From Macrostomum lignano (lineage: Eukaryota): 64,000 bases of DNA. Under the pieces are notes generated by a model, which had not been told where the DNA came from, made no database searches, and was given only the letters and a program-made list of their open reading frames with translations. Below are positions 26,576-50,178 of the stretch, one piece after another; positions within the stretch are counted from its first letter, which is position 1; the number at the start of each line of letters is the position of its first letter. Both the position numbers and the translations under genes were made by a program. The DNA lies in assembly GCA_002269645.1 (NCBI GenBank), contig NIVC01002766.1, positions 62,001 to 126,000 of the forward strand, written 5' to 3'.

Positions 26576-26661
26576 ATAATCCCAATGGAAACACTTACAG
26601 CCCTTAATTGCAGCATAGGTTATGGAGCCACCACAATCCGGAATGCAATGCTTGCGCTCAC

Positions 26662-26928
26662 CGTAATATACACAGCTCTAATTAGCGGCGTTTTGCCTTT
26701 GAAATCGCGAAAATTTGTTGCCAACCCGACGTCGCCTTCGCAAGCTTCCAATATAAATTTGGCCAGGTGGCTTTTGTTGCGATTAACCGCATCAAGGAGC
26801 GCATTGGCCGCTGTCTCCATGCCGGGCTGGTCGCGGGCGGTCTTTGCAGCCGAGCTCTGCATCTGTTGCTGGGGCAGAGCTGAAACTTTACCAGCCTTCA
26901 TCTGGCTCTGAGGATAGGAGCGGTTCAT
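26662..26928 (-). CDS. ANKRD63-like exon 1
   Basis: NALLDAVNRNKSHLAKFILEACE...GKTPLIRAV resembles ANKRD63 TFLEAMQAGKVHLARFVLDAL...GRTPLMVAV; donor ACG|GTGAGC, phase 0; joined CDS 1302 nt = 433 aa; exact start Met uncertain. Confidence 0.85.
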
Positions 26929-27177
26929 CCTTGAGAATCCAGGTATTTACCTCTCTATTGTAAACGCTCTGGGGAGAGGCGATCGCGGAACTTTAAACCG
27001 TATTTTCTGTTCAATAAGCATATTTCGCTGTTTCTGCTCTCAGGTGCAGAGCCAATCGGGCATCAGATGGGAAGCAGTCGGAACTTCTCTGGGAACTTTC
27101 TAGCCAAGAAGTCCAGAAACCAGAACCTGGACTAGCGCATCAACTGATTTTATACAAATGGGTTATGAAAAAGAGTC

Positions 27178-27395
27178 GGCCTGTTCAGTCCAAGGACTGG
27201 GGGGGGGGGTCGCCACATATGCTCAATAACCCCCAGCTAATGCTGACCTCCATTGTACAGCTGGGTAACTGAAGCAATGCAGAGTTAGGCGTCTTGCTCA
27301 AGGACACAAATTGTTCCGATCGTGAGTCGTGAATCGAACCCACGACCTTCAAGTCACGAGTCCGACGCTCTGACCACTAAGGGTTCAACCCCGTG
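27178..27395 (-). mobile_element. tRNA-derived SINE with CORE-like central domain, copy 1
   Basis: Minus strand: A-box-like TAGTGGTCAGAGC, B box GGTTCGATTC, then GTGTCCTTGAGCAAGACGCCTAAC...CAGTTACCCAGCTGTACAATGG, resembling the CORE consensus; 3' hairpin CAGTCC-TT-GGACTG. Confidence 0.8.
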
Positions 27396-27809
27396 TAAAT
27401 CCATGGTCTGGCTGTCGGGTCTCCTTGACTACATGTAGACTGACTGCATGCATGGCCCAACCCCGGAGAGAAAGATTTCTTTGATGTGTTCACTTCAGCC
27501 TCGATCTAATTGGCAATTAACTTACAGTCGAAAAATTGCGTGCGCGTTTTTAATGATCGAACTGGAGCAAAATTACACTTCCTAAAAAGTTAATTCTAAA
27601 TCTTAGGATTATTAGTGCTGAACTTTTTAAATGCTGCTACGAGAGGGAGGTTTGCTTTCAATGGTTCAACATTTTTTTATTACGTAACGGTGCATGCAAA
27701 CGTGGTTTAGATGCTAGACAGATAACACAGTAAAATAGACAAGCCCACTTGGTCGCAGTACAGAAGAAACTCAAAGAGTAGCTTCTCAAGGGCGATGGTA
27801 GGTTCTCAG

Positions 27810-28607
27810 GGTGCCACGGTAGATTCTTAAGGAGCCACACAGTAGATTCTTAAGGTGCCACGGTAGATTCTTTAAGGAGCTACGGTAGATTCTTAAGGAG
27901 CCACAGTAGATTCTTAAGGAGCCACAGTAGATTCTTAAGGAGCCACAGTAGATTCTTAAGGAGCCACAGTAGATTCTTAAGGAGCCACGGTAGATTCTTA
28001 AGGAGCTACGGTAGATTCTTAAGGAGCCACAGTAGATTCTTAAAGAGCTACGGTAGATTCCCAAGGAGCCACAGTAGATTCTTAAGGAGCTATGGTAGAT
28101 TTCCAAGGAGCCACAGTAGATTCTTAAGGAGCCACAGTAGATTCTTAAGGAGCTACGGTAGATTTCCAAGGAACCACAGTAGATTCTTAAAGAGCTACGG
28201 TAGATTCCCAAGGAGCCACAGTAGATTCTTAAGGAGCTACGGTAGATTTCCAAGGAGCCACAGTAGATTCTTAAGGAGCTACGGTAGATTTCCAAGGAGC
28301 CACAGTAGATGCTTAAGGAGCTACGGTAGATTTCCAAGGAGCCACAGTAGATTCTTAAGGAGCTACGGTAGATTCCCAAGGAGCCACAGTAGATTCTTAA
28401 GGAGCTACGGTAGATTTCCAAGGAGCCACAGTAGATTCTTAAGGAGCTACGGTAGATTTCCAAGGAGCCACAGTAGATTCTTAAGGAGCTACGGTAGATT
28501 TCCAAGGAGCCACAGTAGATTCTTAAGGAGCTACGGTAGATTTCCAAGGAGCCACAGTAGATTCTTAAGGAGCTACGGTAGATTTCCAAGGAGCCACGGT
28601 AGATTCC
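27810..28607. repeat. 21-bp minisatellite (AAGGAGCCACAGTAGATTCTT) evolving into a 42-bp dimer
   Basis: Right half alternates CCACAG...TTCTT and CTACGG...TTTCC units. Confidence 0.95.
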
Positions 28608-28821
28608 AGAGCGTAGTTCCTTTTAGTTTTTAGATGTATGTTGAATATGCAGTTTTATTTTTCAGTGCAAAATGCAGTGCAGTGCATATGCAGTGCAAAA
28701 TTTAATAGCCATGATTTCAATAAGAATTATTTTTCGTCTCGATCGCCTTGCACACGCAATAATAATTGAATAATTTAGTACAGCTGCCTTATTGAGCGCG
28801 GCGCATCTGAAGGCTGCGTAC

Positions 28822-30119: not shown

Positions 30120-30659
30120 TCACCTGTCGGTTTTATCCGCCCCAGTAGCACCAGAAGAATCCGCCGACACAAGCGCCATAGCGGCAGTATAAACGCTAGT
30201 AAAAGAATAGCCTTCAGCTCCGAGCATGTGGCTATCGTCTAGAAAGTACTCAATGTACTTTAAATGGCAGAGCAGAGCCGGCTGGCCGGAGGTGGCCACA
30301 ACGAATGCCAGCACGGGCACCAGATCGTCGGCGCCGATTTCGCCGGCCCCGACGGCCGATCGCATCGCCGCTAAGGCGCTGTTCAGAGTGTCCTGCAACA
30401 GTTGGCACTTTGCCAAAGGCGTACCAGGCGAGGCGCACAGTCGGCGCAGTAGGTCGCGCGATTCCGACAACGGCGCTAAATCGGTTGTTAAACTGTCGAA
30501 TCTTTGACCGACGCCGCACAGTTTAGCAACGGATTCTAACTGAGAGGAGACCTGACAGTCTGCCTGTTTGTCCCCTGCTACTTCGATCATGACAGCGGCC
30601 AGTCTGCTGAGATGAGGCCGCAGTACGATGGCCAGTCGGGCCAGGGCGCACGACTCCAC
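30120..30659 (-). CDS. VPS9D1: VPS9D1-like, C-terminal VPS9 domain (downstream of a frame break near 30660)
   Basis: PGTPLAKCQLL...IGADDLVPVLAFVVATSG...KYIEYFL...GAEGYSFTS carries the VPS9 GADD motif; TGA at 30120-30122. Confidence 0.82.
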   Translation of the reverse strand: MESCALARLAIVLRPHLSRLAAVMIEVAGDKQADCQVSSQLESVAKLCGVGQRFDSLTTDLAPLSESRDLLRRLCASPGTPLAKCQLLQDTLNSALAAMRSAVGAGEIGADDLVPVLAFVVATSGQPALLCHLKYIEYFLDDSHMLGAEGYSFTSVYTAAMALVSADSSGATGADKTDR

Positions 30660-31117
30660 CCGGGGGAGAGCAGGCGGCCAGACAGCAGCGCGGAGCACGC
30701 GGCCACCTCGTGACTGGCTAATCCGCCATCGCTGCCGCCGCCGCCGCAGAGAAGACAGGCGGCCGGAGCCAGCCGACGCAACAGACGACAGGCGACGCGG
30801 CCGACTCTGGCTGAGGAATCGTCGCGATCGGCGTCAAGCAGCAGACTGTCCGTCAGGCTCAATAGTTCAACGTCGGGAGCCTCGACAGAGTCGGCAGGGG
30901 TTGGCGGCGCTACGGACAGCCGATTGGCCAGCCGGTCGGAGAATGCGGCAATAAAAGCAGCCAGTGGGTGGTCGGGAATGGACAGCACGTACTGCAGGCG
31001 GGCAGGCGGCTGGCCGGCGGATTTCTGGTACAGCTGATCCCGGTACAGCACCAGGTAGTCGAACTCGCTGCACCGGCAGTACAGGGTGCGCAGCTCGGCG
31101 GCATCGATGGCCTTTTC
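30660..31117 (-). CDS. VPS9D1: VPS9D1-like exon 2, 5' part
   Basis: EKAIDAAELRTLYCRCSEFD...DHPLAAFI...LLSPGW resembles VPS9D1 EQRALYAAILEYE, HPIAQLL and FFSPLW; phase-0 acceptor CCTTCAAG|GAA; boundary at 30660 approximate. Confidence 0.7.
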
Positions 31118-31135
31118 CTTGAAGGGGGTGGGGGC

Positions 31136-31720
31136 ACTGAATCTTATCGCCTCTGACACCGAATCTGATCGCCTCTGACACCGAATCTGATCGCCTCTGA
31201 CACTGAATCTTATCGCCTCTGACACCGAATCTTATCGCCTCTGACACTGAATCTTATCGCCTCTGACACTGAATCTTATCGCCTCTGACACTGAATCTTA
31301 TCGCCTCTGACACCGAATCTTATCGCCTCTGACAACGAATCTTATCGCCTCTGACACCGAATCTCAGCACACTTGACACCGAATCTTATCGTCTCTGACA
31401 CCGAATCTCAGCACACCTGACACCAAATCTTATGACACCTGACACCGAATCTCAGCACACCTGACACCGAATCTGATCACACCTGACACCGAAGCTCATC
31501 ACACCTGACACCGAATCTGATCACACCTGGCACCGAATCTCATCACACCTGACACCGAATCTCATCACACCTGACACCGAAGCTCATCACACCTGACACC
31601 GAATCTGATCACACCTGACACCGAATCTGATCACACCTGACACCGAATCTCATCACACCTGACACCGAATCTGATCACACATGACACCGAATCTCATCAC
31701 ACCTGACACCGAATCTTATC
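31136..31720. repeat. 22-bp minisatellite (CTGACACCGAATCTTATCGCCT, shifting to ...CTCATCACAC) filling the VPS9D1 intron
   Basis: Direct reading; two subtypes along the array. Confidence 0.93.
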
Positions 31721-31785
31721 CTAGCAATAATTATCAAACACTGACTGACACAAAGGAAAATATCACAGAATCCTTAAAGCCAAAC

Positions 31786-32457
31786 CTCATCAGACTCCAC
31801 AGGTCCGTCATCATATTCGAATACCTCCGTATGCAGCTGAAACAGGCGGCTACAGTCGGTCCGTTTAGCCAGCAGATCATCCTGCAGAGCCTGTTCAAAA
31901 GCCGCCTGTTTCGGCTTAGCCAACTGCAAATTCTCTTCTATTCGGCGTTGCAAAGCCAGGTGTAAATTAACCCGGCGTGGGTCACCTTTGGGCAGGGCGC
32001 TGGTCCTAGCCAGATGGGCGCTGTAGAGCCGCCTGTTCAGCTCCATCGCTTCTTGCATGGGGGATTTACGCGGGCCAAGATAGGCTGGAGCTGGAGGAAT
32101 TGGAGAAGAGGCAGTACCCGCAAACTGCGCCGGAGTCTGGGCCGCTGCTTGATGAGGCGGCGGCTTACCCGGTTGCTGGGGTGTCCGATTATTCATACCA
32201 GGAGGGGCGGCATTTAATAACGCGTCGCTTCGTTCTAAACACAATTTCATCAATCGCATCAACTTCCGCTGCTCATCCAACTGTTGAGCTGATAATTGAG
32301 CAACTGGGACAGCCTGAGAGGCGGCAGCAGCAGCTGAAGCAACAGCCGCAGCCAGGACCTGCTGCATGCAGGCTAAATAAGGGAAATAGCATCGTTCGCT
32401 TTGGCCTTGTTCGTCCTGACGGAGAACGTCTAGGACTGCCGTCACGGCCGTCTGTGA
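31786..32457 (-). CDS. VPS9D1: VPS9D1-like exon 1; begins at a phase-0 acceptor with no ATG
   Basis: LMRLMKLCLERS and KSPMQEAMELNRRL...LHLALQRRIEENLQLAK match VPS9D1 MLKLAQQCLERA and LSPMEEASLQNQKL...LTLSLQRQMMENLVIAK; acceptor GCTGCAG|TCA, donor GAG|GTTTGG; 224 codons. Confidence 0.82.
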
Positions 32458-32574
32458 CTGCAGCGGAATTTTTTAATCAAATCAAAATTTGCGGTATAAT
32501 AAGTTATTCTTTTACGCCAATAATAGTTCCAATCCAAAGAGCACTGCATCTTGAGAACCTTTCCGGGAGTCAAT

Positions 32575-33955
32575 CATCTAGATAAACTTTCCTAGAAACC
32601 GTTATGTAGATAAACTTTCCTAGAATCTGTCATCTAGAAAACTTTTCCTAGAATCAGTCATCTAGAGACCTTTTCCTAGAATCTGTCATCTAGAGAACTT
32701 TTCCTAGAATCAGTCATCTAGAGAACTTTTCCTAGAATCTGTCATCTAGAGAACTTTTCCTAGAATCAGTCATCTGGAGAACTTTTCCTAGAGTCAGTCA
32801 TCTAGAGAACTTTTCCTAGAATCAGTCATCTGGAGAACTTTTCCTAGAATCAGTCATCTAGAGAACTTTTCCTAGAATCAGTCATCTGGAGAACTTTTCC
32901 TAGAATCAGTCATCTAGAGAACTTTTCCTAGAATCTGTCATCTAGAAAACTTTTCCTAGAATCAGTCATCTAGAGACCTTTTCCTAGAATCTGTCATCTA
33001 GAGAACTTTTCCTAGAATCAGTCATCTAGAGAACTTTTCCTAGAATCAGTCATCTAGAGAACTTTTCCTAGAATCAGTCATCTGGAGAACTTTTCCTAGA
33101 ATCAGTCATCTAGAAAACTTTTCCTAGAATCAGTCATCTAGAGACCTTTTCCTAGAATCTGTCATCTAGAGAACTTTTCCTAGAATCAGTCATCTAGAGA
33201 ACTTTTCCTAGAATCTGTCATCTAGAGAACTTTTCCTAGAATCAGTCATCTGGAGAACTTTTCCTAGAGTCAGTCATCTAGAGAACTTTTCCTAGAATCA
33301 GTCATCTGGAGAACTTTTCCTAGAATCAGTCATCTAGAGAACTTTTCCTAGAATCAGTCATCTGGAGAACTTTTCCTAGAATCAGTCATCTAGAGAACTT
33401 TTCCTAGAATCTGTCATCTAGAAAACTTTTCCTAGAATCAGTCATCTAGAGACCTTTTCCTAGAATCTGTCATCTAGAGAACTTTTCCTAGAATCAGTCA
33501 TCTAGAGAACTTTTCCTAGAATCAGTCATCTAGAGAACTTTTCCTAGAATCAGTCATCTAGAGAATCTTTCCTAGAATCAGTCATCTAGAGACCTTTTCC
33601 TAGAATCTGTCATCTAGAGAATCTTTCCTAGAATCAGTCATCTAGAGACCTTTTCCTAGAATCTGTCATCTAGAGAATCTTTCCTAGAATCAGTCATCTA
33701 GAGACCTTTTCCTAGAATCTGTCATCTAGAGAATCTTTCCTAGAATCAGTCATCTAGAGACCTTTTCCTATAATCAATCATCTAGAGAATTCTTTCCTAG
33801 AATCAATAATCTAGAGAACCTTTCCTAGAATCCATCATCTAGAACTTTTCCTAGAATCCACCATCTAGAGAATTCTTTCCTAGAATCAGTAATCTAAAGA
33901 ACTTTTCCTAGAATCAATCATCTAGAAAATCATTCCAAGAATCTGTCATCTATAC
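32575..33955. repeat. 28-bp minisatellite (TCTAGAGAACTTTTCCTAGAATCAGTCA) between RPL13 and VPS9D1
   Basis: About 48 units with recurring variant blocks. Confidence 0.96.
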
Positions 33956-34207
33956 AACCATTCCTAGAATCAATAAAGAACATTTCTCAGAATTCCTAGA
34001 AAAAAACATTTTAGAAACTTTCGTATTTCCGCATAACAGAAAAAAAAACTAGAAAGACTTGACATTTTTAATCCATCAATCAAATTGGGCACGCGCAAGT
34101 GTATTTAACGGTGTCAATTTTATTCAAGTTGTTAGTTAAGCTTTTAACGCACAAAGGGAGAAACAGCCACCATTAGATCAGCTATATAGCTCAGCTTAGT
34201 TAACTCA

Positions 34208-34831
34208 TCACTTCTTCTCCTTCTCAGCCTGCTCGGCTTTCTTCTTGCGCAGTCCGTCGAGCCGCTTGTTCGCCCGAGCCTGTCGGATAGCGTGGAAGGC
34301 GTGGAACTTCTTGTCGTCCTCCGATTGGACGCGAGCCTTCACGCGGCGCAGTCGGCGGCCCGGAGCCACCACAGGCGGCAGCGGACGCTGTACAACAGAC
34401 CGAAGTTCCTCCTCCGAAGCTTCGCCAGCCTTCGGCGCCTTGGGATTCTTCGGGAATAGGATCAGCTTGCCGCGGTAGGCCTTCAATCGCTGGGCATTGC
34501 GCTGCAGACTCTCGGCTGAGCGATTCTTGCGCCGATGATCAACGGCGATGCCGATGGTTTGGGCGAGTCGGCGATTGATGCCGGCGGCCTTGAGCTCGTC
34601 CAGGCTGAAGCCGCGGCCGGGGCGGACACGCATGTTGTACCTGATGGTCTGGCAGCGGACCACCGGGCGAAGAGGCCCGTTCACTGGCCGGGGCGCTATA
34701 AGGCGCGCCTTCTCGACGCGAGCTTTACGACGGCGCTCCTTGCGAGCGGGCTGGTTGAACCAGGTGCGAACAAAGCGCTGCCAGTCCTTGTGGAAGTGGG
34801 CATTCGGTATGATGTTCTTGCGCTTCACCAT
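34208..34831 (-). CDS. RPL13: 60S ribosomal protein eL13, 207 aa (true ATG 34831, not the ORF-track start 34873)
   Basis: [35 protein letters not shown]...[10 protein letters not shown]; acceptor TTTTCCAG 14 nt upstream; AATAAA on minus strand at 34119-34124. Confidence 0.97.
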
Positions 34832-36479
34832 GGCGACCGGAACTGCTGGAAAATCTGCAATTGCAAAAGTCAAACTTTGTTATTACTATGAGTAGGTTGA
34901 CTGGATTATTTGTTTTTTTATTGAAGAAGTTAGATCTAAACTATTAGTTAGAGGACTCAAATGGGGACCTTTGACCAACATTTCTGAGCTAAAGGATATT
35001 GATGCTATTCAAACAAATTTCTACAAATACCTTTTCAACCTCCCAAAGCATCTTAGCAATAGTATCATTTAAGCTGAGCTCAGCATCTTGCCAATTTCCT
35101 ACACCAGATCCATAAAGCTTTTTAAATTTATTTGGTTAAAACTAAGACACAAAAACACTATCAACACCCCCATTGAACTCTGAAGCAAACACAAGCTCAC
35201 AAAATCTATGGAAAACTAATAATGTAACTGAAATACTACATGGCATCAATTTGGAATGCATGACCACAATGAACCCAGACAAAAAATCTCTGTTTTACAT
35301 TACCTTCCCACTCCTAAATCTTATTTACATGCCAGAAAATTCCAACATATAACATATGTGTAAAATGGTTAGCATAAAGGGGTGATAGTCATTTTGTCAA
35401 CTGGCGTTTTGTCAACTTAGTTGACAAAGTGACCAAAGTGTTGGGGCAACTTTATTGGTAGTTAACAAAATGACCAATGCCTAGGTCTCCCCTATTTGCT
35501 TATTGACAAAGTGACCAAAATTTTACTATATGAATGATATAGCTGATATAACTGCATAATCTTGTAGCTGACAATAATTATTGTATCTATTACATTGTTT
35601 TAATAATTACCTTATTTTACATAAACAATGATCAAAAATTGCAATGGATTTGCTATTAATATTACTGCAATACTACATCATATATGTGTCATCCATATGA
35701 TGATGACAACTTGAACAAATCTCGAAGACTTAAACATTTAAATATGACAACTTTGACCAAAGGCAAGGGTGTATTAATTTTGGATTTTTCTACCTTCGGG
35801 CAAAAATCCCTTGCATATGCACCCGTAATTTTTATATTAACTGTGTCAATTAATGCTGATTCACCCCTGATTGCTGCATCAGCGATCAGGGTCGGCATTG
35901 CGTTCGTGCAAATTAATCCGGAGAAATTGCGCAGACGAATCACAACGAAATTTTCTTTCTCCTGCTTACTCCAACAGCCGGGTTCTCAAGTCTAATAAAT
36001 CTAATAAAACTATAAAATAAAACTAACAAGTCTAAAGTGTGCAAAACTAATAAATAAATTTAAACTAAACTGTCGAACACAAAAGGAAAAAGGCAAGAAA
36101 AAGAAAAAGGAAAAGGGGGTTGAAAATTAGGCGGCACATCAAGACAGTATAAATATTAAAAAAAGGAGGTTACAATCAACGGGTGGGGGTGCCGCTGGAC
36201 ACACTACTGGACCAAAAATCCCATGCGTGGAGACTACCGATGGAATGGCTCACAGGTTACATGCAAGCAACAAAATTAAAACAAAAGTTTTGACCAAGAT
36301 TTGACCAAGACCTACTTTTCCAACCAAAGGAAGAATAGAACAATTTCTGGAACCTCCAGTCAATGGAAATGTGACAAAAATTGAACAATGAGCGGACAAA
36401 AATTAAACGTTTGTAGCAGTTTTCCTTTTAAATGAGTTATTAAAGTAATGGTTATTAGCCTGATTGCAGCGCATGGGCA

Positions 36480-36672
36480 TTTTGGCGGACGGCGTCCGGC
36501 GCGGATCTAATACGGCGCGGCGCGGCGTGTACGGCGCGCGGCGATTAGTACGGCGCGGCGCGGTACTAATTAGATGCCGAGGCATTTAGGCTTGATAAGA
36601 CAGTCATAGTTACTCCTGCCGTTTACCCAAAACTGCGTTAATTTTGCTTTAGGGTTTCTTTCACAGGTAAGT
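36480..36672. promoter_or_regulatory. Putative bidirectional promoter for RPL13/RPL36, with a candidate noncoding first exon of RPL36
   Basis: CpG-dense island in AT-rich context; plus-strand TTTCTTTCACAG|GTAAGT (pyrimidine tract then perfect donor at 36666/36667). Confidence 0.55.
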
Positions 36673-39600
36673 CATTTCACAGCGTGGCGCAGGTTGTGTA
36701 GGCGTCTGGCGTACTTAAGCCATGCGCTGCAATAGGGGTTATTAGTTCAAATATCAATTAAGTGGCACCCGACTGCCACACATGACTACTGAGAATACAC
36801 TGTAAATTGTTTTAATTTGTTGGCAAACAAGAACACGCTGCCGCCATGAGCTAAGATCCTTGCGCAGCCAATGCAACACAATATGATGATTTAGTGAATG
36901 CAGCATTGTCCAATACTGAGATGATGACGATTTAGATAATTTAGTTGTTTTTCTCATAAGCCGCAGATGACGATCTCAAATATGACGACTTCGGCCGGAA
37001 CCGCATATTCAACTTTAATTCTAACCCATATATATCTGTGCGTTGATGATTCTTAGGCATTTGTATGTTATGTGACCATATATGTATCTATATAGGTTAT
37101 TCATTCTAGCAAAATGCATCAGGAACAAGAACATCAGGAGTCATGAAAATTAGTGAACTGTGTCTACAAGTTCCCACTCCTCTACCCTGCTATGTGTAGT
37201 CAACCAAAGCTGATCCCCTATAATAAGTCTTGATATCTAGTAATGCTCTTGGAGAATATCATGCACAATTCAAATGCATCATACCATATTATATAATGCA
37301 TTTCACTTTGTCATACTTAATACTAGGCTTCTATAAGCTGGTTTAAAGGGAAGCAATACCTATAAAAAATGGAAAAATGATATATGTTCTATCTCTGTGA
37401 CATACCAGGGTATGTTATTCTAATTCAAATCCAAAAAGAAATATTGTATTATACTCATCAGTCATTAGTACTTAGAAGTTAGTGAGTTGCAAGATTTAGA
37501 TTTGACTAAGCTTGAAAAGAAGACTTTTGACCAAAATCCAAAAATCCAAAATCTTAAAATAATCAAGATAGCATAATTTATTATTGAAGTTTCATACTTT
37601 TCATTTTTATCATTTTCATTTAGAAATAAAAAAAACAAATTTTGATCAAATTGTTTGTGTGGTATAACTTGAAAAATTATTGAAAACATTTTACATTTCT
37701 TGTAATTTTCTAATAAATAAACAAAGCACCTTTGCTTATGTTTGAATTTATCATCAAATGTAAACCAAAAGTAAGTATAGGCCCTAACATTTTGACTTTT
37801 ATCAATAAATAAACTTAAAATAAAAAACTGTCACCAAAATGATCCAAATATATCGCCAAAATGACTATCACCGAAGTGACTTGTCACCAAAGTGACTGTT
37901 GCCAAAGTGATCTGTCGCCGAAATGATCAGTGACCTCCCCTAGGAGCCTACTTTAAAAATCCTAGATCTGTTACGGGTCATTTCAAGGTTTTTTTTTCTG
38001 AAAAATTTAGTTTTTTGTGGCCGCGGGGGGTTAGGCCTAGTTAATTGGCAGTTGATGAAGTGACCATAGGCGAAAATAAAAACTTTTAAAAAATGAGCTC
38101 TAGCCTCCAAGTACAACTTACAAGTCTAATATTATACTTGTAAAACACATTTATAAATCAACCTACAAAGGCTGCCTACTATACCTACTACTATTAAAAA
38201 GGGACATAATCATTGTCCAAACTGGCATCATTATAATTTGCCGTGTTTTCTAGGCCAAATTTTTAGACAAGACATTGAAAAGACACTGACTGTCTCACTG
38301 TCTGACTTGAACTAGCCTAGAACTACTCAACTAGTAAAGGCCCTGTTGCCCTCGCAATGAGTCCTCATCAGATTCAGCAACATACTGAATAACACGGATA
38401 GGCCTACTAGAATTAAACTAGAAAACTTGCAAACGAAAGAGGTCCTTAAAACGTTCTAAGGACTAGGCCTAACCAATTTAAATTTCAAACTTATACTAAG
38501 ACAGGCAATGATTAGTCTGCTTTAGTTTAAACTAGACGTGTAGAAACATATGAAATCTTGCTCGGCCTACAAATGATTTAAAATTGTTACAATGTATAAC
38601 AAACCAAAATTCTCTATAATTAAGCAACGTCAGTTGTTAAAAAGAATTATGTATTTATACTTATTTAAAATTATTCTTTCATTAAAGTTTACTAATATTG
38701 TAATTACAGTTTTTAATATAACGAAAAGTCTGTTGAAATATTTCAAGAAAAAAATACTAATGCTAGGCCTATATAGCTAGCAACTTTGCAAGCCTCTCAC
38801 GTAAGGCGGGCGGTAGGGACTAACAATAGCTGGCTATGCCACTATGCTAGCCTGCTTAAAGATGAACATCGAATACTAAACTTTGTCTTATACTAAGTTA
38901 CTAAGTTATTACATTTTTTGCCGTTGTATAAGGTCTAAGTCTAAGCCCTAAAAGGGAAACTAAGGTCTACTATCTGATGATCTAAATATTTAATAATTAG
39001 CCTTAAGAGTTAAGTCAGAAATTTAAGGTCTTTATATTTTATTAGGCCTCATTGGCCCCCTAGGCCAAACTTTAAAGTTTACTAATAAAAGATAAAAAAT
39101 AATTGTTTCATCTTAGACTTAGCCCCCCCCCCTAGTTAGAATTAGATTAGAATACATTATAGGCCTATATAAAATTAAAATAGGCCTATAAAAATAGACC
39201 TAGGGGGGGCTAAAATTAGAAAAAAGTAAAGAATATTTCATATTTGCATTTCATAGGCCCTTATGATACTTTTTAGCCTATGCATTATGTAAAGATATGT
39301 TGCATTGCTATTTTCCATGCCATGCCTTACCTTTATATCATAGATATATTAGGCCTAGGCCTAGCCTATGAAATTAAGCAAGTTCTAGCTAGCTAGGGCC
39401 TATTGGCTTAGCCAATAATAAAATTTATTGTTTTTAATAGTTGACTAGCTAGCCTAATTTGCGCTGTCAACTAAGCCCTAGGGCCTAGCATCTAGAATTT
39501 TATTGTTTCCCCTTGGCCGTACACCTATATGGTTATACAAATTAAATCAAGTAGGGCCTAATTATCTTGCTAGTTCGATGCAATAAGTTTTTTATTAGTT

Positions 39601-41961
39601 GGCTATAAATCTTTTGATATAATCAAATTTAAATTAGCTATAAAGTTCAAGTTTCTCATTATATACAATTAAATTAGGCTTAGTAATTTTAATAGTTAGT
39701 TGGATACAAATAAATTAAAAAGGCCTATTTAAAAAAGCTTTCAAATATTTAATCTCTCTTAGCAATGAGCTAGAACTTAATAAAAATATATTTATCATCT
39801 TGGGCACATTTGATATGTTTTGGGGAAGAAATTATAAAAATCAACTAAAAGCCTTTTGGGAGATTATCATTTGTACAATATAAGCAAGCAAACATATATA
39901 AACTTTTTATTTTTAGTATATTTCTTGCTCTTAGGCAATTTACTGCTCTAAGGAAATCTTCTTTAGACTATTAAGTAATTTTCACTTTCAGTAGGGTTTA
40001 ATTCTCCCAATGTTGGGGTTTCTTATAAAAGAGATAAAAGAAATAAACTGGATAACAAACTTGATTAGTAAGCCTATCTTTCCAAATTGGAAGTTGATTA
40101 TAAAAGTTTACAAGCAGGTAGAAATACCAAGTTGTTGCTCTTTTAGTTTTTAGGCTTTTATTTATATTGGCTGTAAAGTCAGTTTCAAACCATTATATAC
40201 CATTGAAACAAATTTATTTATAAAATATTTTTGGAAACACTAATTCAATGAAAATTAAGGATAAGCTTTAAATGCAGTAAGCCTTTTCTTACTGCAGTAA
40301 GCAGTAAGTAATTCTTAAAAAAGAATAAGTTTTTAAAAAGAATATATAAGAAAAGAATAGGCCCTATACTAAGTCTATATAATGAATGTTATATTACTAG
40401 GCCTATAAAAAGAGCACTATGTCACTAGCATATTCAAAAGAAAATAGTTATTAATTTTTAGTATATGGATTAATTGATCAATATTACTAAATTAAACAAA
40501 AGAACTAGATATACAAATTATTTTCTTGTAAGTATATTTCAAGTATTTTAAGTATATACTTCAAGAAATAACTTTAGGACTTAAAGACTATTTGAGCTTT
40601 TAATTTCATTGACTAGTAAAAAGTAAATCAATAAAAATAACTAGGTAAGTAGATGTTATTAGTGGTATTACAAACCTTTTTAAAAGGAACTTTAAGTCAT
40701 AGGTTGAAAAGATTTTCAATGCTTTATATTATGAATAAGATGAATATAATTAGGATAATAAGGTTAAGGTATAGATATAAAAGGTTTTATTTGAACACAT
40801 GAATATACCATAAATAAATAATATATTATAAATGAGTTTTAAGTAAACTATTGCTTTAATTCTTTATTTTCTCATTATATTTTATTAAGTGATAGAAGAA
40901 CCATTGCTATTGGAATTAATATCAATTTAAAGTTTAAGGAAGTTATAGGAAATTAGTAGCTATAGATATTGATTGATATAAATAAACTATGGGAAAAATT
41001 AGCTACCACTATAGATACAAATATAGGCAATTGTGGGTTATAGTAGAACTCTAAGAATTAATACATTGTAGTTATATTATCAATAATATAATCAGGATTA
41101 ACATAAAAATATATATATATCTTTCTAATAATCATAATATACTTACCTAAATGATAAAATAGTAGTCAAAGTTCTCAAACATATAAGTGTACCATATTAT
41201 TGTCCTGTATATTATAGGCCCTATTATTTAACCTTTCAGTAATAATATATTTATAGTATGGCTTAGTTATAAACCAAATATATTTTTATAAAATGAATTA
41301 TTTATATTAGATGACCTTGTTTGTTCATTATATGCTCAAAGTACCTTGATAGCATTGGCATAGTTATGATGTATGATAATTAAAATTTAAACCTCCAAGT
41401 AATTGATATGTTTGCATTGGTTGGCATTAGGAATCCCTAAGTATGTCTATGTTATTTAGTATTCCTCATTTGTATTATAACATGGAATATCTAAAAGAGC
41501 AGATTGAGCAAATTGCCTAATAAAATGATTATTTATGCAATAGTGCTTCATCTCACATGCCAGAAACACAATTTAACATAATTTCAAGTGTTTATCTTAT
41601 TGAGAGAAATCCCTACCTAAAAATTTTTATCTAAAGGTTTTGAAATTTGAGATTTTTATTTTTCTATTTTGATTGGATTTTTAAAATAAAAATAAGCCTT
41701 TTTGTCAACTGAAATGTTAAATGCAGTAAAATGTTAAGTTATTCATGAGTGCCATGCATGCACCTATAAAGTAAAACTCAATTGAAGCATTCTGGTAGGG
41801 ATTTGTTAGTCAGACAAGTGCTTAGATTTTTGTCTGATGTGTTTTAGACATAAGATGAAGCACTTTGTAGTTTGCATCACCATTGTATTTGAAATTTTTT
41901 GGTCAATCCGCACTTCTAGATGCACCATAGTTGCTATTTTAATCTCTGAACTCCCGCAGAC

Positions 41962-42279
41962 ATGGCCCCAGCCTATGAGATCTGTGTCGGCCTGAAAAAG
42001 GGCCACCGCATCACGGCCAACACACCTCGCCCCAAGCCAGCCAATCGTCGGGGCAAAAGTACTAAAAATAACAAATTTGTCCGCTCCGTTATTCGCGAAA
42101 TTGTCGGCTACGCGCCGTACGAGAGGCGAATTGTTGAACTGTTGAAAATCTCCAAGGACAAGCGGGCGCTGAAGTTTGCTAAGCGTCGGCTTGGATCGCA
42201 TCTGCGCGCCAAACGCAAGCGCGAAGAGATGGTGCGAGTTGTGCAGGCGCAGCATCGCAAGAAGGAGCAGAAGGAGTAA
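41962..42279 (+). CDS. RPL36: 60S ribosomal protein eL36, 105 aa
   Basis: [18 protein letters not shown]...[52 protein letters not shown]; acceptor CCCGCAG|AC ATG. Confidence 0.97.
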
Positions 42280-42445
42280 CTTGACCCGATGACCCTTGCC
42301 ATCTGTGGCTCTTTAATGTCGAGTTATGTTGTGTCCTAATTCAATTATACAGAACACTCGACAAATGCTTGGATTGAAAAAATCATTTTGTGTAAACAAT
42401 TAAGCGACTGTCTTTTGTTGTTCATATTGCCTTTGTTATTTATAA

Positions 42446-43720
42446 TCTAGAACATCAGTGTTTGTACAGGTGCCAGAATCTAGAACATCAGTGTTTGTAC
42501 AGGTGCCAGAATCTAGAACACCAGTGTTTGTACAGGTGCCAGAATCTAGAACATCAGTGTTTGTACAGGTGCCAGAATCTAGAACATCAGTGTTTGTACA
42601 GGTGCCAGAATCTAGAACACCAGTGTTTGTACAGGTGCCAGAATCTAGAACATCAGTGTTTGTACAGGTGCCAGAATCTAGAACATCAGTGTTTGTACAG
42701 GTGCCAGAATCTAGAACATCAGTGTTTGTACAGGTGCCAGAATCTAGAACACCAGTGTTTGTACAGGTGCCAGAATCTAGAACATCAGTGTTTGTACAGG
42801 TGCCAGAATCTAGAACATCAGTGTTTGTACAGGTGCCAGAATCTAGAACATCAGTTTGAGTACAGGTGCCAGAATCTAGAACATCAGTTTGAGTACAGGT
42901 GCCAGAATCTAGAACACCAGTGTTTGTACAGGTGCCAGAATCTAGAACATCAGTTTGAGTACAGGTGCCAGAATCTAGAACATCAGTTTGAGTACAGGTG
43001 CCAGAATCTAGAACACCAGTGTTTGTACAGGTGCCAGAATCTAGAACATCAGTGTGAGTACAGGTGCCAGAATCTAGAACACCAGTGTTTGTACAGGTGC
43101 CAGAATCTAGAACATCAGTGTACAGGTGCCAGAATCTAGAACATCAGTGTTTGTACGGGTGCTAGAATCTAGAACACCAGTGTTTGTACAGGTGCCAGAA
43201 TCTAGAACATCAGTTTGAGTACAGGTGCCAGAATCTAGAACACCAGTGTTTGTACAGGTGCCAGAATCTAGAACATCAGTGTTTGTACAGGTGCCAGAAT
43301 CTAGAACACCAGTGTGAGTACAGGTGCCAGAATCTAGAACATCAGTGTTTGTACAGGTGCTAGAATCTAGAACACCAGTGTTTGTACAGGTGCTAGAATC
43401 TAGAAAACCAGTGTTTGTACAGGTGCCAGAATCTAGAACACCAGTGTGAGTACAGGTGCCAGAATCTAGAACATCAGTGTTTGTACAGGTGCCAGAATCT
43501 AGAACACCAGTGTGAGTACAGGTGCCAGAATCTAGAACATCAGTGTTTGTACAGGTGCCAGAATCTAGAACATCAGTTTGAGTACAGGTGCCAGAATCTA
43601 GAACATCAGTTTGAGTACAGGTGCCAGAATCTAGAACACCAGTGTTTGTACAGGTGCCAGAATCTAGAACATCAGTTTGAGTACAGGTGCCAGAATCTAG
43701 AACACCAGTGTCAGTACAAG
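42446..43720. repeat. 33-bp minisatellite (TCTAGAACATCAGTGTTTGTACAGGTGCCAGAA) between RPL36 and NPL
   Basis: About 38 units. Confidence 0.97.
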
Positions 43721-44151
43721 CGTCGAGTCTAATGCAATGTAAACATGTACGTAATGCATACGGTCTGCTGGTAAATCAAGTTCTCCAGATTGTTTATGTA
43801 ACGCCAAAATCCAATAGAGTGAGGTACTTTCAATGCGTGTACCTGCAAAGTTATTCAAAAAAAAACTCTGAGCTCCTCAACAACCGCTGATATGCATTTA
43901 GGCACGTGCTCAAAAACTGTACCCAATCAATCTGCCGCAGTGTAACTAGAGAAGTCGGTAATATTGTTGAATAATTCAGACATTTTCGTTCGAGGCACGC
44001 ATGCATTTACTTGAAACTTGAAACAAACGTGTCTTATTCCCACCCGGAGGCTAGCGTATAAAATAACACTCAAAACACCCCAACAGGTGTTTCAGCCCTA
44101 CTACTCGAGTGGTTCTCGTTACTCGTTACTCGTTACCAGTCAAGTTTTACA

Positions 44152-44739
44152 ATGCAGCAATTCCGTTTACCCAGACTGACCGTCCCAACGTTCACCCCTA
44201 TGACGCCAGACGGGGAGTTGGACCTGGACAAGATCCCAGCCTACGCCCGCCTGCTCAGCCAGTCCGGGGTACGGAGCGTCTTCGTCTGCGGCAGCACCGG
44301 CGAGTTCCCCAGTCTCAGTCTGGACGAGCGCAGGCGTGTTCTCGAAGCCTGGTGTCAGGCCCGCGCTGACGGCCTAATCGACACGGTGACCGCTCACGTG
44401 GGCACCTGCTGTCTCAAGGACACCATCCTACTGGCCAGACACGCCGTGCAAAAGTGCAACGCGGACGCTGTAGCATCCGTGGCTCCCTGGTACTTCCCTA
44501 TTGACCAGATCGACGCTACAGTGGAACTGCTGGCCAAGGTGGCTGCTGAGTGCGACGGCAAGCCCTTCTATTATTACCACATCCCGATGTTCACCAACAG
44601 CAAGCTAGACGTGGCCCAGCTGATGCGCCGGGCCGCTGCACTTGTGCCGAACCTGGTCGGGCTGAAGTTCACGGACTCTTCGCTTAGTCAACTGGCCGCC
44701 TGCTCGGAGGTTGTTGCACCCGACGGGCGACAGATGCAG
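44152..44739 (+). CDS. NPL: N-acetylneuraminate lyase (DHDPS family) exon 1
   Basis: FTPM, FVCGSTGE, FYYYHIP, Schiff-base lysine GLKFT; donor CAG|GTGCAG; 196 codons. Confidence 0.88.
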
Positions 44740-44789
44740 GTGCAGGCGCGAGTTAAAGTTGCCTTTATGGTTGATTTATTATGATCTAC

Positions 44790-45585
44790 TCAGACCTTCC
44801 CACACTACCCAACCTACTCAATCCATCCAATCTACTTAACCTACTCAACCTACCAACATATCCAATCTACTTAACCTACCTAACCTACTAATCAACTTAA
44901 CCTACTAAACCTACCAATCCATCCAGTCTACTCAACCTACCAATCTACTCAACCTACCAATCCATCCAATCTACTCAACCTACCAATCTACTCAACCTAC
45001 CAATCCATCCAATCTACTCAACCTACCAATCCATCCAATCTACTCAACCTACCAATCCATCCAATCTACTCAACCTACCAATCCATCCAAATTACTCAAC
45101 CTACCAATCCATCCAATCTACTCAACCTACCAATCCATCCAATCTACTCAACCTACCAATCTACTCAACCTACCAATCCATCCAATCTACTCAACCTACC
45201 AATCCATCCAATCTACTCAACCTACCAATCCATCCAATCTACTCAACCTACCAATCCATCCAATCTACTCAACCTACCAATCCATCCAATCTACTCAACC
45301 TACCAATCCATCCAATCTACTCAACCTACCAATCCATCCAATCTACTCAACCTACCAATCCATCCAATCTACTCAACCTACCAATCCATCCAATCTACTC
45401 AACATACCAATCCATCCAATCTACTCAACCTACCAATCCATCCAATCTACTCAACCTACCAATCCATTCAATCTACTCAACCTACCAATCCATCCAATCT
45501 ACTCAACCTACCAATCCATCCAATCTACTCAACCTACCAATCCATTCAATCTACTCAACCTACCAATCCATCCAATTTACTTAAT
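44790..45585. repeat. 26-bp G-free minisatellite (CTACTCAACCTACCAATCCATCCAAT), NPL intron
   Basis: About 28 units plus degenerate left edge. Confidence 0.95.
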
Positions 45586-45599
45586 CCACACCACAACAG

Positions 45600-45971
45600 G
45601 CCATAATCGGTCTGGACGACCTGACTTTGCCAGCCAGATCGGTGGGTGTCCTGGACGGCATCGGCGCCAGCTACAATCTGATTCCGGACGTTGTCAATTC
45701 TCTAGCCAACAGCTTTGACTCGGGCAATCTGAGCACAGCTCGCAGCGAGTCCAGCCGCATCCGGTCCCTATTCGAGGCGATCTCATCGGCAGTGGAAGGC
45801 TACGGTATGGTGTCGCTGTTAAAAACCACCATGTCCTTGATGCGAATGGACCTAGGACCGCCGCGTCTGCCGTTGAAGCCGCTGAATTCGCCTGCTAGAA
45901 TCATTCTAGAACAGCGGCTAAAGTTCGACGGATTCTTAGCCAGGGATGAAGCGCAAGAGAAGCTGGCTTGA
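45600..45971 (+). CDS. NPL: NPL exon 2 (last)
   Basis: AIIGLDDLTLPARSVGVLDGIGASYN...MDLGPPRLPL resembles NPL FLFGVDEQLL...GAVGSTYN...LGPPRLPL; acceptor CAACAG|GCC; joined 319 aa; AATAAA 46064-46069. Confidence 0.88.
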   Translation, partial: AIIGLDDLTLPARSVGVLDGIGASYNLIPDVVNSLANSFDSGNLSTARSESSRIRSLFEAISSAVEGYGMVSLLKTTMSLMRMDLGPPRLPLKPLNSPARIILEQRLKFDGFLARDEAQEKLA

Positions 45972-46194: not shown

Positions 46195-46808
46195 TTGCTA
46201 CTGGGGAATTCCTGCTACTGGGGAATTCCTGCTACTGGGGTATTCTTGCTACTGGGGTATTCCTGCTACTGGGGTATTATAGCTACTGGGGTATTCCTGC
46301 TACTGGGGTATTCCTGCTACTGGGGTATTCCTGCTACTGGGGTATTCCTGCTACTGGGGTATTCCTGCTACTGGGGTATTCCTGCTACTGGGGTATTCCT
46401 GCTACTGGGGTATTCCTGCTACTGGGGTATTCCTGCTACTGGGGTATTCCTGCTATTGGGGTATTCTTGCTACCGGAGTATTCTTGCTACTGGGGTATTC
46501 CTGCTAGTGGGGTATTTCGATTATTGGGGAATTCCTGCTACTGGGGTATTCCTGCTAGTGGGGTATTCTAGCTACTGGGGTATTCTAGCTACTGGGGTAT
46601 TCCTGCTACTGGGGTATTCCTGCTACTGGGGTATTCCTGCTAGTGGGGTATTTCGATTATTGGGGAATTCCTGCTACTGGGGTATTCTAGCTACTGGGGT
46701 ATTCTAGCTACTGGGGTATTCCTGCTACTGGGGTATTCCTGCTACTGGGGAATTCCTGCTACTAGGGTATTCCTGCTACTGGGGTATTCCTGCTAGTGGG
46801 GTATTCCT
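46195..46808. repeat. 17-bp minisatellite (GGGTATTCCTGCTACTG) between the convergent NPL and NUMA1 3' ends
   Basis: About 35 units. Confidence 0.95.
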
Positions 46809-47551: not shown

Positions 47552-47945
47552 TCAGTCGCCCATCACCAGTTTGCGTACAGTCTTAGCGCTGCTGCTGCCG
47601 CTGCCACCGCCTGCGGGTCGGCGAGGTCCCGGCCTGCCCGGGTTCATCTCGATGCTATAGACCAGGGTTTTCTTGGCTGGCACAACCGGTTCGGCCGAGC
47701 TAGACGAAGCTGATACAGAGCTGTTATTGTGCTGCTGCTGCCCAATGGCATGGCTGGAGCGATTCTCGCGTTCTGAGCCGCCGCTAGGCCAGCGCTGATG
47801 CTGCTGCGGCTGCTGCTGCTGTTGCTGCAGCGTCGACATGGAAGCCGACGTATTTTTCGGCCTAGTAGAAGCGGCGGCCGATGTCGTCGACGCCAGTCTT
47901 GGCGCGGCAGATTTCGGCGATTTGAACAGGCGCTGACGCTGAGGT

Positions 47946-47981
<36 letters not shown>

Positions 47982-48114
47982 ATTCCGCCAGCAGACAGGC
48001 GGTTACGATCGCTCAGCACAGCGGCGGATGTCGACGACCATGTCGACGCTAATGTCGATGTCAGGGCTGACGTGGCGATGGTTGAAGTGGACCGACTTGC
48101 CACGGCGGACGAAG
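47552..48114 (-). CDS. NUMA1: NuMA-like exon 10 (last)
   Basis: Phase-1 acceptor AATCCCAG|CT just after an in-frame TGA, branch-like CTGAT upstream; KKTLVYSIEMNP resembles NuMA RQSMAFSILNTP; minus-strand AATAAA at 47451-47456. Confidence 0.72.
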
Positions 48115-48188
48115 CTGGGATTCAGTTTGAGGGGCAGCAAAATCAGTCTGCGAACATTGCACTGACACAAATTGACTGTCGAACGTAC

Positions 48189-48221
48189 CTAAAGCTAAAA
48201 TACGACATGTGTCGCCGTTTT
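48189..48221 (-). CDS. NUMA1: NuMA-like 33-nt microexon (exon 9), (E)NGDTCRILAL
   Basis: TATCAG|AA...TTAG|GTACGT, phase 1 on both sides; gives IVESTENGDTCRILALAS versus NuMA ITDEEMKTGDPQETLRRAS. Confidence 0.6.
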
Positions 48222-48249
48222 CTGATACGACTTTTCTCCGCGTTGCTTC

Positions 48250-49222
48250 CCTGCTCTCTCTTCTCTCTCCCCCCTCTATCTTCATTTCTTCCCCCTCTCT
48301 CTCCCCCTTATCCTCTTTTCTTCCCCCCTATCCCTCCCCTCTATCCTCTTTCCTTCCCCCCCTCTCTCTCCTCTCTATCTTCTTTCCTCCACTCTCTCTC
48401 TCCCCTCTTATCTTCTTTCCTCCACTCTCTCTCTCCCCTCTTATCTTCTTTCCTCCACTCTCTCTCTCTCCCCTCTATCCTCTTTCCTCCACTCTCTCTC
48501 TCCCCTCTTATCTTCTTTCCTCCACTCTCTCTCTCCCCTCTTATCTTCTTTCCTCCACTCTCTCTCTCCCCTCTATCCTCTTTCCTCCACTCTCTCTCTC
48601 CCCTCTTATCTTCTTTCCTCCACTCTCTCTCTCCCCTCTATCTTCTTTTCTTCCCCCATCTCTCTCTCCCCTCTTATCTTCTTTCCTCCACTCTCTCTCT
48701 CCCCTCTATCCTCTTTTCTTCCCCCATCTCTCTCTCCCCTCTTATCTTCTTTCCTCCACTCTCTCTCTCCCCTCTATCCTCTTTCCATCCCCCATCTCTC
48801 TCTCCCCTCTATCTTCTTCCCTTCCCCTCCCCTTCTCCCCCTTCTATCCCCCTCTTTCCCCTTTTCCCTCTCTTCCTTTCCCCTTCTCTTCCCTCCCCCC
48901 TTTTTTACTTCCCCTTCTCTTCGCTTCCCCTCTCTTATCTTCTCCTCTCTTCCACCCCCTCTCTTCCCTTCCCCTCTCTTCCCTTCCCCTCTCTTCCCCC
49001 CTTCTCTTCCATCCCCCTCTCTCCCCTCCCCTTCTCTTCCATCCCTCCTCTTCCCTCCCCCTCTTCCCTCCCCTTCTCTTCAATCCCCCTCTCTTCCCTC
49101 CGCCTCTCTTCCCTCCCCCTCTCTTCCCTCCCCTTCTCTTCCCTCCCCCTCTCTTCCCTCCGCCTCTCTTCCCTCCCCCTCTCTTCCCTCTCCTCCCTTT
49201 CCTCTCCCCTCTCTTCCACCCA
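48250..49222. repeat. CT-rich low-complexity/degenerate tandem repeat (purine-rich on the NUMA1 sense strand)
   Basis: Almost exclusively C/T on + strand with about 28-30-bp and 21-bp periodic sub-blocks. Confidence 0.9.
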
Positions 49223-49262
49223 GGGATCACTTTTTTATCACTGAGGCTACAATGCCACTCAC

Positions 49263-49860: not shown

Positions 49861-49964
49861 CTTTGGGGTGGGATGGGGCGCAAAGCAACCATGGCATAGA
49901 GAATCGTGATATGTATCAATAATCCATGCGAAAATTCACTTAATCTTCTCTCACACAGGTACAT

Positions 49965-50158
49965 AATTCCTGACACAAACCTTGAATCCCTGACACATAC
50001 CAAGAATTCCTGACACATACCAAGAATTCCTGACACAAACCAAGAATCCCTGACACATACCAAGAATCCCTGACACATACCAAGAATTCCTGACAGAAAC
50101 CAATAATCTCTGACACATTCCAAGAATCCCTGACACATGTCTAAAATCCCTGACACAA
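49965..50158. repeat. 20-bp minisatellite (CCTGACACATACCAAGAAT(T/C))
   Basis: About 10 units. Confidence 0.9.
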
Positions 50159-50178
50159 AACTAGAAACCCCGACAAAC

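Follow-up and report, generated by a model that had tools for sequence, protein, structure and literature searches.

Divergent RPL13 and RPL36 genes of Macrostomum lignano, each followed by a conserved gene with a predicted spliced-leader-derived 5' end

We analyzed a window of 64,000 nucleotides from the free-living flatworm Macrostomum lignano (assembly Mlig_3_7, GCA_002269645.1; contig NIVC01002766.1:62001-126000), in which two divergently transcribed ribosomal-protein (RP) genes, RPL13 and RPL36, are each followed on the same strand by another conserved gene with a housekeeping role, a VPS9D1-like gene behind RPL13 and an N-acetylneuraminate lyase (NPL) gene behind RPL36. All positions given are those of the window. 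We consider it probable that these are ordinary divergent RP genes, each with a trailing gene processed by spliced-leader (SL) trans-splicing, that the minisatellite arrays filling the two spacers are neutral, and that the symmetry of the two sides is coincidental. M. lignano uses a single SL of 35 nt, CGGTCTCTTACTGCGAAGACTCAATTTATTGCATG, the 3' end of which is ATG; as reported, about 30% of its genes are trans-spliced and about 15% lie in operons (PMC8629364), while 15% of its genome consists of tandem and simple repeats (PMC5730564).

The gene placement proposed in a preliminary description of this DNA, with RPL13 and VPS9D1 on the reverse strand and RPL36 and NPL on the forward strand, had the right coordinates, as judged by Pfam, tblastn, and structure matches. 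The RPL13 coding sequence (CDS) is a single exon (34208-34831, - strand; Pfam L13e, E=1.8e-74), and the RPL36 CDS lies at 41962-42279 (+ strand; Pfam L36e, E=2.1e-40). The VPS9D1-like gene (- strand) consists of exon 1 (31786-32457), devoid of a genomic ATG, an intron (31118-31785), and exon 2 (30120-31117), which contains the VPS9 domain (Pfam VPS9, 6.8e-15) and the stop codon and was located by tblastn of PAA62346.1; the closest relatives outside Macrostomum are proteins named VPS9 domain-containing protein 1. The NPL gene (44152-45971, + strand; exons 44152-44739 and 45600-45971) matches the DHDPS/NPL family, its best solved structure being the N-acetylneuraminate lyase 6arh (E=6.5e-45). 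This four-gene block exists in three assembled copies, the window copy, copy B (NIVC01001069.1, loci L001/L004), and copy C (NIVC01001948.1, locus L003), which fits the redundancy known for this assembly (PMC5730564). The RPL13 protein is identical in all three; for RPL36, copy B encodes the same protein, and copy C shows 98.7% DNA identity.

Both RP mRNAs have published transcripts that carry an SL flag. In the supplement of Grudniewska et al. (2016, eLife), an RPL13 transcript of 851 nt (RNA1509_261) and an RPL36 transcript of 510 nt (RNA1509_12861) are flagged {TRANSSPLICED}, and a second RPL36 transcript of 513 nt has no such flag. Both flagged lengths fit a 35-nt SL joined to a single genomic exon that runs from the ATG-proximal acceptor through the 3' untranslated region (UTR); the fitted 3' UTRs end about 70 nt (RPL13) and about 10 nt (RPL36) short of the arrays, and the RPL13 transcript is consistent with use of the distal poly(A) signal. 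The acceptors (carets mark junctions) are TTTTCCAG^CAG^, a tandem NAGNAG site, for RPL13 (34842-34851, - strand), as identified by the transcript flag and by copy comparison, and CCGCAG^, 2 nt 5' of the ATG, for RPL36 (41954-41959, + strand), as identified by the flagged 510-nt transcript. The flags thus indicate that the acceptors beside the ATGs are trans-splice sites rather than cis-acceptors for a distant leader exon, and since the RP mRNAs are trans-spliced, no 5' leader exon is needed. The RP mRNAs would gain the 35-nt SL at acceptors 2 to 14 nt 5' of their ATGs, with no cis-spliced leader exon.

The copies also differ at the RPL13 acceptor itself. Copy C reads TTGCATG^CAGTTCC (L003:9975-10000) at the place where the window reads TTTCCAG^CAGTTCC (34843-34852), and a second RPL13 locus reads CATG^CAG (L007:9990-10000) where its sister copy has CCAG^CAG. 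The SL ends in TTGCATG, and its last 4 to 7 nt stand in place of the acceptor. Since Pilon polishing of Mlig_3_7 used RNA-seq in addition to DNA reads, these footprints are most likely polishing artifacts at very highly expressed trans-spliced genes, which would mark the SL junction; conversion mediated by cDNA is the alternative. Neither RP mRNA has the SL AUG in frame with its CDS (34829-34851 for RPL13; 41960-41998 for RPL36), and this AUG would open short upstream open reading frames (uORFs), encoding MQFRSPW and overlapping the start codon in RPL13 and encoding a peptide of 12 residue letters across the start codon in RPL36. As these are among the most highly translated mRNAs, the SL AUG must be bypassed efficiently.

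VPS9D1 shows a need for an SL. The preliminary description had noted an in-frame acceptor and no ATG, and both hold: exon 1 starts right after CTGCAG^ (AG at 32458-32459, junction 32458/32457), and the open frame is closed by a TAA at 32473-32475, five codons upstream. The deposited proteins PAA72661.1 and PAA62346.1 (copies B and C; 555 aa) are 5'-partial and begin with QSQTAV at this acceptor. In an exhaustive HMMER search followed by alignment, Met1 of mollusc orthologues and of one Logan relative aligned at the acceptor (a protein from the nemertean Lineus lay outside this alignment), thus indicating that VPS9D1 lacks only its initiator plus at most a few residues. The first genomic methionine lies about 30 residues into the conserved N-terminal region. 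Joining the SL at the acceptor gives ...GCATG^TCACAG..., which is in frame and reads MSQTAVTAV. VPS9D1 requires an AUG from elsewhere and the SL ends in one that is in frame, which supports a need for the SL. On these sequence grounds, it is very likely that the VPS9D1 mRNA is SL trans-spliced, and its start codon would be the AUG that ends the SL. Two details are not fully reconciled with this precise junction, since the first codon of the deposited models lies 3 nt upstream of the AG^ and the UniProt models, derived from the older ML2 assembly, start with QQSQTAV.

In Schistosoma, Cheng et al. described initiation at the 3'-terminal AUG of a flatworm SL ("slORFs") in 2006 (J Biol Chem; cited via PMC9851317). 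VPS9D1 resembles such cases in sequence, as AUG forms the 3' end of the SL, the acceptor lies in frame, no usable genomic AUG lies upstream of the conserved N terminus, and that N terminus begins at the junction. NPL, at its annotated site, and both RP mRNAs differ from slORFs, since there the SL AUG is out of frame or is followed by a short uORF.

For NPL, the preliminary description had pointed to an in-frame acceptor 12 nt before the ATG. Such an acceptor, TACCAG^ (44134-44139, + strand), is indeed present, and the SL AUG would be in frame there. However, this site deviates from the published trans-splice motif [T/C]TNCAG and is not the annotated 5' end. That end is TTTCAG^ (44090-44095, + strand), which fits the motif: the NPL model of copy C (337 aa, LLLEW...) starts exactly at this junction (44095/44096), 56 nt before the ATG, and the model of the window copy (339 aa) starts 4 to 6 nt upstream of it. 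At the 44096 acceptor, the SL AUG is out of frame. Going by the annotation, the NPL mRNA would start at TTTCAG^.

Operons in trans-splicing animals are known, as the preliminary description had noted, and M. lignano both trans-splices and has catalogued operons (PMC8629364). The published rule for this species calls for a same-strand neighbor and for trans-splicing of the downstream gene, with less than 1 kb between the two after repeat adjustment (PMC8629364). Same-strand adjacency is found for RPL13 and VPS9D1 (-) and for RPL36 and NPL (+), with no called gene between them in any of the three copies. The left spacer, from about 34045 to the acceptor at 32458, shrinks to about 160 nt once its 1,426-bp array is subtracted, and the right one, from about 42430 to 44095, shrinks to about 390 nt after subtraction of 1,275 bp, both being well below 1 kb. 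The mode of the repeat-adjusted intergenic distance in M. lignano operons is about 100 bp (PMC8629364). With downstream genes that are predicted to be trans-spliced, both pairs would thus belong by the published rule to the class that has been catalogued as M. lignano operons. Repeat-inflated operon spacers have already been described there and were read as neutral accumulation (Ustyantsev and Berezikov, 2021; PMC8629364).

The deposited gene names separate the two pairs. Mlig prefixes denote clusters of transcriptional units, with SL and poly(A) signals afterwards serving to split the units into genes (PMC5730564), and RPL36 and NPL have the prefix Mlig001005 in common (NPL of copy B, g2; RPL36 of copy C, g3; NPL of the window copy, g5). 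The two genes are unrelated in sequence and would carry one prefix only if they had been assembled as one unit, which supports RPL36-NPL as a transcriptional unit. RPL13-VPS9D1 shows no such link, so that the earlier claim of downstream genes riding on RP read-through stands for strand and distance on both sides but for a common unit name on the right side only. What argues for the left pairing is its distance, the need of VPS9D1 for an SL, and the conservation of the spacer, the unique parts of which are 98 to 100% conserved and resemble exons in this respect. Among these is the 89-nt segment that links the array to the VPS9D1 acceptor (32458-32546, - strand), a putative 3' end of an outron or intercistronic region, which is 99 to 100% identical in the three copies. 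The operon idea is thus plausible and in line with published knowledge, better supported for RPL36-NPL than for RPL13-VPS9D1. Under polycistronic transcription of either pair, which we infer from sequence and annotation, the downstream mRNA would be released from a precursor made by read-through, by means of SL addition together with formation of the RP mRNA's 3' end.

Compared with the repeat-inflated operons of M. lignano (PMC8629364; units of Wudarski et al., 2017, PMC5730564), the species, the single SL, and the same-strand pairs are the same, and here too spacers of 1 to 2 kb shrink to a few hundred nucleotides after tandem-repeat subtraction. Neither of those papers covers this locus, RP first genes, or two back-to-back pairs, and of the two pairs here the deposited annotation backs only RPL36-NPL as a transcriptional unit. 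The back-to-back arrangement of two RP-led pairs looks coincidental.

Several points weigh against the reading we prefer. VPS9D1 is named Mlig015965 (g1 in copy B, g2 in copy C, respectively), a transcriptional-unit name of its own that does not include RPL13; both members being VPS9D1, there is no room for RPL13 in that unit, and the published assembly thus left the two genes unjoined, which also holds for the copy whose array is shortest. According to the authors, transcriptional units tend to break in repeats (PMC8629364). On the right side, the unique 421 nt of the RPL36-NPL spacer are only 89% conserved between copies, and a TATAAAA (44057-44063, + strand), 33 nt 5' of the annotated NPL start of the window copy, would fit an independent promoter. 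The SL flags on the RP mRNAs belong to de novo transcripts of a multicopy gene family and not to the window copy specifically, and the evidence that VPS9D1 and NPL are trans-spliced, and that transcription reads through from the RP genes, is indirect.

These points leave room for a tentative alternative, clearly less probable than the reading we prefer, in which VPS9D1 and NPL have promoters of their own in the unique spacer or in the array, a short outron is removed by SL addition or NPL is not trans-spliced at all, and the RP genes are mere neighbors. About 60% of the trans-spliced genes of M. lignano lie outside operons (PMC8629364), VPS9D1 has its own unit name, the TATAAAA at 44057 is conserved in copy B, and the conservation of the 89 nt before the VPS9D1 acceptor could equally reflect a promoter. 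However, a stretch of 89 nt is tight for both a promoter and an outron, and RPL36 and NPL fall under one transcriptional-unit prefix. A transcription start site (TSS) near 44090 would leave an outron of only about 5 nt before the 44095 acceptor, whereas the copy C model starts exactly at the AG^. TATAAA[AT] is moreover common (0.46 per kb per strand), so that one occurrence in 421 nt is weak evidence.

In Caenorhabditis elegans, operons of the SL2 type use a specialized SL2, a Ur element about 50 nt before the trans-splice site, and a spacer of about 100 nt. The M. lignano locus resembles them in the U-rich tract that follows the upstream poly(A) signal and in the proposed resolution of the precursor by 3'-end formation and SL addition. 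The T-rich tracts reported in the preliminary description are present in the RPL13 3' UTR and flank (33973-34207, - strand), where an AATAAA (34119-34124) and an ATTAAA (34067-34072) are followed by runs of nine (34040-34048) and seven (34000-34006) thymines. Unlike in C. elegans, there is one SL and no SL2, and the raw intercistronic distance is 1.6 to 1.7 kb as opposed to about 100 nt, which places the locus outside the SL2 type. The T-runs (34000-34048) and the acceptor (32458) are separated by about 1.6 kb, so the runs cannot act as a Ur element beside the splice site.

VPS9D1 might instead take its AUG from a tiny cis-spliced first exon, located in the array or upstream of RPL13, but we regard this as very unlikely. 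The ML2 models starting with QQSQTAV speak for it, since none of the three copies has a codon for their first Q beside the acceptor. On the other side, the alignment of orthologue Met1 at the acceptor allows for Met and a few residues at most, the SL provides an in-frame AUG exactly there, and the deposited Mlig_3_7 models, being 5'-partial, begin at the acceptor. Reading through the 89-nt segment, we noticed no ATG with a GT[AG]AG donor, although no systematic donor scan was made.

Three further observations concern VPS9D1. At about 30662-30666, the window copy has a run of five C's where copy B has six, a 1-nt deletion that shifts the frame, so that only a C-terminal protein of 156 aa was deposited for the window contig; copy C encodes the unshifted 555-aa protein, and the change is either a homopolymer assembly error or real and pseudogenizing. 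A second M. lignano protein, A0A1I8JR37 (UniProt, 564 aa), is 57% identical to the VPS9D1-like protein, thus pointing to an older paralogue elsewhere in the genome. Finally, human RPL13 and VPS9D1 map to 16q24.3, no more than a few hundred kb apart, which raises the thought that the adjacency of these genes might be old linkage rather than a flatworm-specific operon.

Turning to the spacers, we confirmed by Tandem Repeats Finder that both consist mostly of arrays. A 28-bp minisatellite (32547-33972, 50.9 copies) makes up 81% of the 1,751 bp between RPL13 and VPS9D1, and a 33-bp minisatellite (42444-43718, 38.8 copies) makes up 68% of the 1,872 bp between RPL36 and NPL. The same tool found a 22-bp minisatellite in the VPS9D1 intron (31135-31720, 26.6 copies), a 26-bp one in the NPL intron (44805-45581), and a 17-bp one 3' of the NPL poly(A) signals (46196-46808). 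In all, 24 substantial arrays cover 38.5% of the window, compared with 15% for tandem and simple repeats genome-wide, and an array share of 65% or more is reached by 25% of random 1.8-kb windows.

The two spacer units do share the strings named in the preliminary description, TCTAGA and CTAGAA..ATCAGT being present in both consensus sequences, but the likeness is at the level of chance. Their best local alignment scored 9, a value that 23% of shuffled pairs reached as well (p~0.2), and the pair ranked 30th among the 276 array pairs of the window. CTAGAA..ATCAGT lies on the + strand in both arrays. Only one of the two transcripts would thus carry it in sense orientation, with the other carrying its complement, and the arrays are not mirrored relative to transcription. 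The mirror image proposed earlier does not survive this comparison: the arrays are unrelated and co-oriented, and the two sides are unequal as to transcriptional-unit support, conservation of the spacer, and the frame of the SL AUG. The left-right symmetry is most likely coincidence.

Array length varies strongly between locus copies. In the order window, C, and B, we counted 50.9, 34.9, and 19.9 copies of the 28-mer and 38.8, at least 28.5, and 7.8 copies of the 33-mer, which amounts to a 2.5- to 5-fold difference for the spacer arrays. The 22-mer of the VPS9D1 intron gave 26.6, 29.6, and 23.6 copies; for the 26-mer of the NPL intron and the 17-mer, which are not covered in copy C, the values for the window and copy B were 30.2 and 5.7 and 36.1 and 23.6, respectively.

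Paralogous RP loci carry arrays as well. RPL13 has a second locus (Mlig018539; L006/L007, NIVC01001332.1 and NIVC01000890.1), here called RPL13', with 93 to 94% DNA identity in the CDS and unrelated flanks; it stands alone, and the gene downstream, a methyltransferase gene, is convergent. An array of about 1 kb with a 21-bp unit begins about 200 nt past its stop codon, and because the neighbor is convergent, the combination of an RP gene and an array thus occurs without any downstream cistron. RPL36 likewise has a second locus (L008/L009, NIVC01002733.1 and NIVC01002021.1), the same-strand cluster MRPL47-RPL36'-Tudor, which has different arrays in both spacers and in introns. An older model, A0A1I8IBM5 (455 aa), fuses this cluster into one protein through a translated minisatellite.

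The notion that minisatellites serve as tunable spacers is thus not supported, as arrays occur everywhere, including in introns and behind RPL13', where there is no downstream cistron. The simplest reading is that the arrays reflect neutral minisatellite turnover in any noncoding DNA of this genome and would be fast-changing filler rather than built-in spacers. An alternative in which array length governs polymerase read-through or SL trans-splicing to the downstream cistron, with copy-specific expression of VPS9D1 and NPL and with a position behind RP genes as a general means of expressing low-abundance genes, is in our view highly improbable.

Among other arrays of the window, six minisatellites with periods of 34, 25, 15, 21, 16, and 21/42 fill most of the stretch from 17700 to 28610. 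GATT[CA] is present in 12 of the 24 array units, often as (G/T)GATTCT. A common GATTC core of the window minisatellites was considered and set aside as marginal, since the top 5-mer occurred in 8 units, compared with a mean maximum of 5.7 and a highest value of 9 after shuffling.

Between the RP genes, a single bidirectional promoter had been proposed at 36480-36670. We aligned the 7.1-kb inter-RP region of the window with copies B and C and found that this segment sits in a copy-specific insertion of 1.3 kb (35700-37003) that is absent from both other copies, its flanks being 56 bp apart in copy B and about 360 bp apart in copy C, where a different insert is present. The distance between the RPL13 and RPL36 ATGs is 7.1, 8.6, and 10.0 kb across the three copies. 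A shared, conserved promoter between closely spaced divergent TSSs is thus not what the region offers, and folding of the proposed promoter region was unremarkable (z = -2.1). The best-conserved noncoding DNA between the RP genes is instead the first 150 bp 5' of each ATG (97 to 99%), followed by the next 400 bp or so (95 to 97%), while the interior is mostly 85 to 93% conserved, except for a 287-bp island (37543-37829) at about 97%. As conservation is highest within the first 150 to 500 bp, each RP gene most likely has its own proximal upstream region, and RPL13 and RPL36 would simply be divergent neighbors with 7.1 kb between their ATGs. Like vertebrate-type bidirectional-promoter pairs, in which less than 1 kb separates the TSSs, the locus has two highly expressed housekeeping genes in divergent orientation; unlike them, it has 7.1 to 10 kb from ATG to ATG, carries the proposed block in one of three copies, and forms its mature 5' ends by trans-splicing.

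The full model of the preliminary description, in which one bidirectional RP promoter at 36480-36670 drives two mirror operons and minisatellites tune read-through to VPS9D1 and NPL, draws on the symmetric gene order, on spacers that are mostly array, on 2.5- to 5-fold copy-number differences as material for tuning, and on CTTTCACAG^GTAAGT at 36650-36672, which resembles a short leader exon with a donor, but it can hardly be upheld given that the block is missing from two copies with the same RPL13 and an identical (B) or nearly identical (C) RPL36, that the RP mRNAs carry the SL and their ATG-proximal acceptors are therefore trans-splice sites, that the ATG-to-ATG distance is large and variable, that the array units are unrelated and co-oriented while intronic arrays vary equally, and that RPL13' has an equivalent array and no cistron behind it. 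For the bidirectional promoter itself, which had been deduced from the sequence, the copy comparison contradicts the proposal.

The 35700-37003 insertion may be a nonautonomous mobile element. It contains three TACGGCGCGGCGCGG-like motifs and a 23-nt imperfect inverted repeat (36454-36476/36720-36742), and its ends are alike over 60 to 80 nt (35699-35760 versus 36920-36996). It holds no open reading frame (ORF) of more than 103 aa (ORFs were listed and no family library was searched) and no Rfam match, and no further copy was found in the window or at the compared loci. The insert that copy C carries near the same position is different, GC-rich, and about 300 bp long.

At the right end of the block, NPL has poly(A) signals at 46064 and 46128, and the next gene is convergent. 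This large gene (47552-52279, - strand; about 1,480 aa in deposited models) encodes a protein with Q-rich and low-complexity segments and has no Pfam match on record; several minisatellites lie there, some of them open as ORFs in the raw six-frame list.

Searches beyond the three copies added little. An Rfam scan of the whole window gave no match, thus leaving no snoRNA or SL RNA gene between the RP genes, and the SL sequence is absent from the window; a bacterial promoter and terminator scan was set aside as irrelevant to this organism. Exact-protein look-ups gave no match for the 207-aa RPL13 or the UniProt VPS9D1 models, whereas the deposited 5'-partial forms did match. Searches of Logan and ENA found no M. 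lignano transcript contigs for these genes. The eLife 2016 supplement had matches for the RP genes only, the supplements of Wudarski 2017 and Grudniewska 2018 had none for VPS9D1, NPL, or the Mlig identifiers, and a full-text literature search had none for Mlig015965.

Taken together, the observation is real yet ordinary for the M. lignano genome. Little of it is new, since SL trans-splicing, operons, and repeat-swollen spacers have already been published for this species and the deposited annotation already implies at least the RPL36-NPL unit, and the ideas of a tunable spacer and of a mirror design find no support. For users of Mlig_3_7, it matters that RNA-seq polishing seems to have put the 3' end of the SL into the assembly at the acceptors of highly expressed genes. 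If array length did exert control, VPS9D1 and NPL would be expressed in a copy-specific manner along the series of 51, 35, and 20 copies for the 28-mer and of 39, at least 28, and 8 copies for the 33-mer, and low-abundance genes would generally be expressed behind RP genes in this flatworm; the three locus copies form a natural series of spacer lengths that, with copy-resolved RNA data, is usable for an effect of array length. VPS9D1 cleanly illustrates a predicted dependence on the SL AUG, and its deposited proteins, labeled as partial, probably lack only the methionine.

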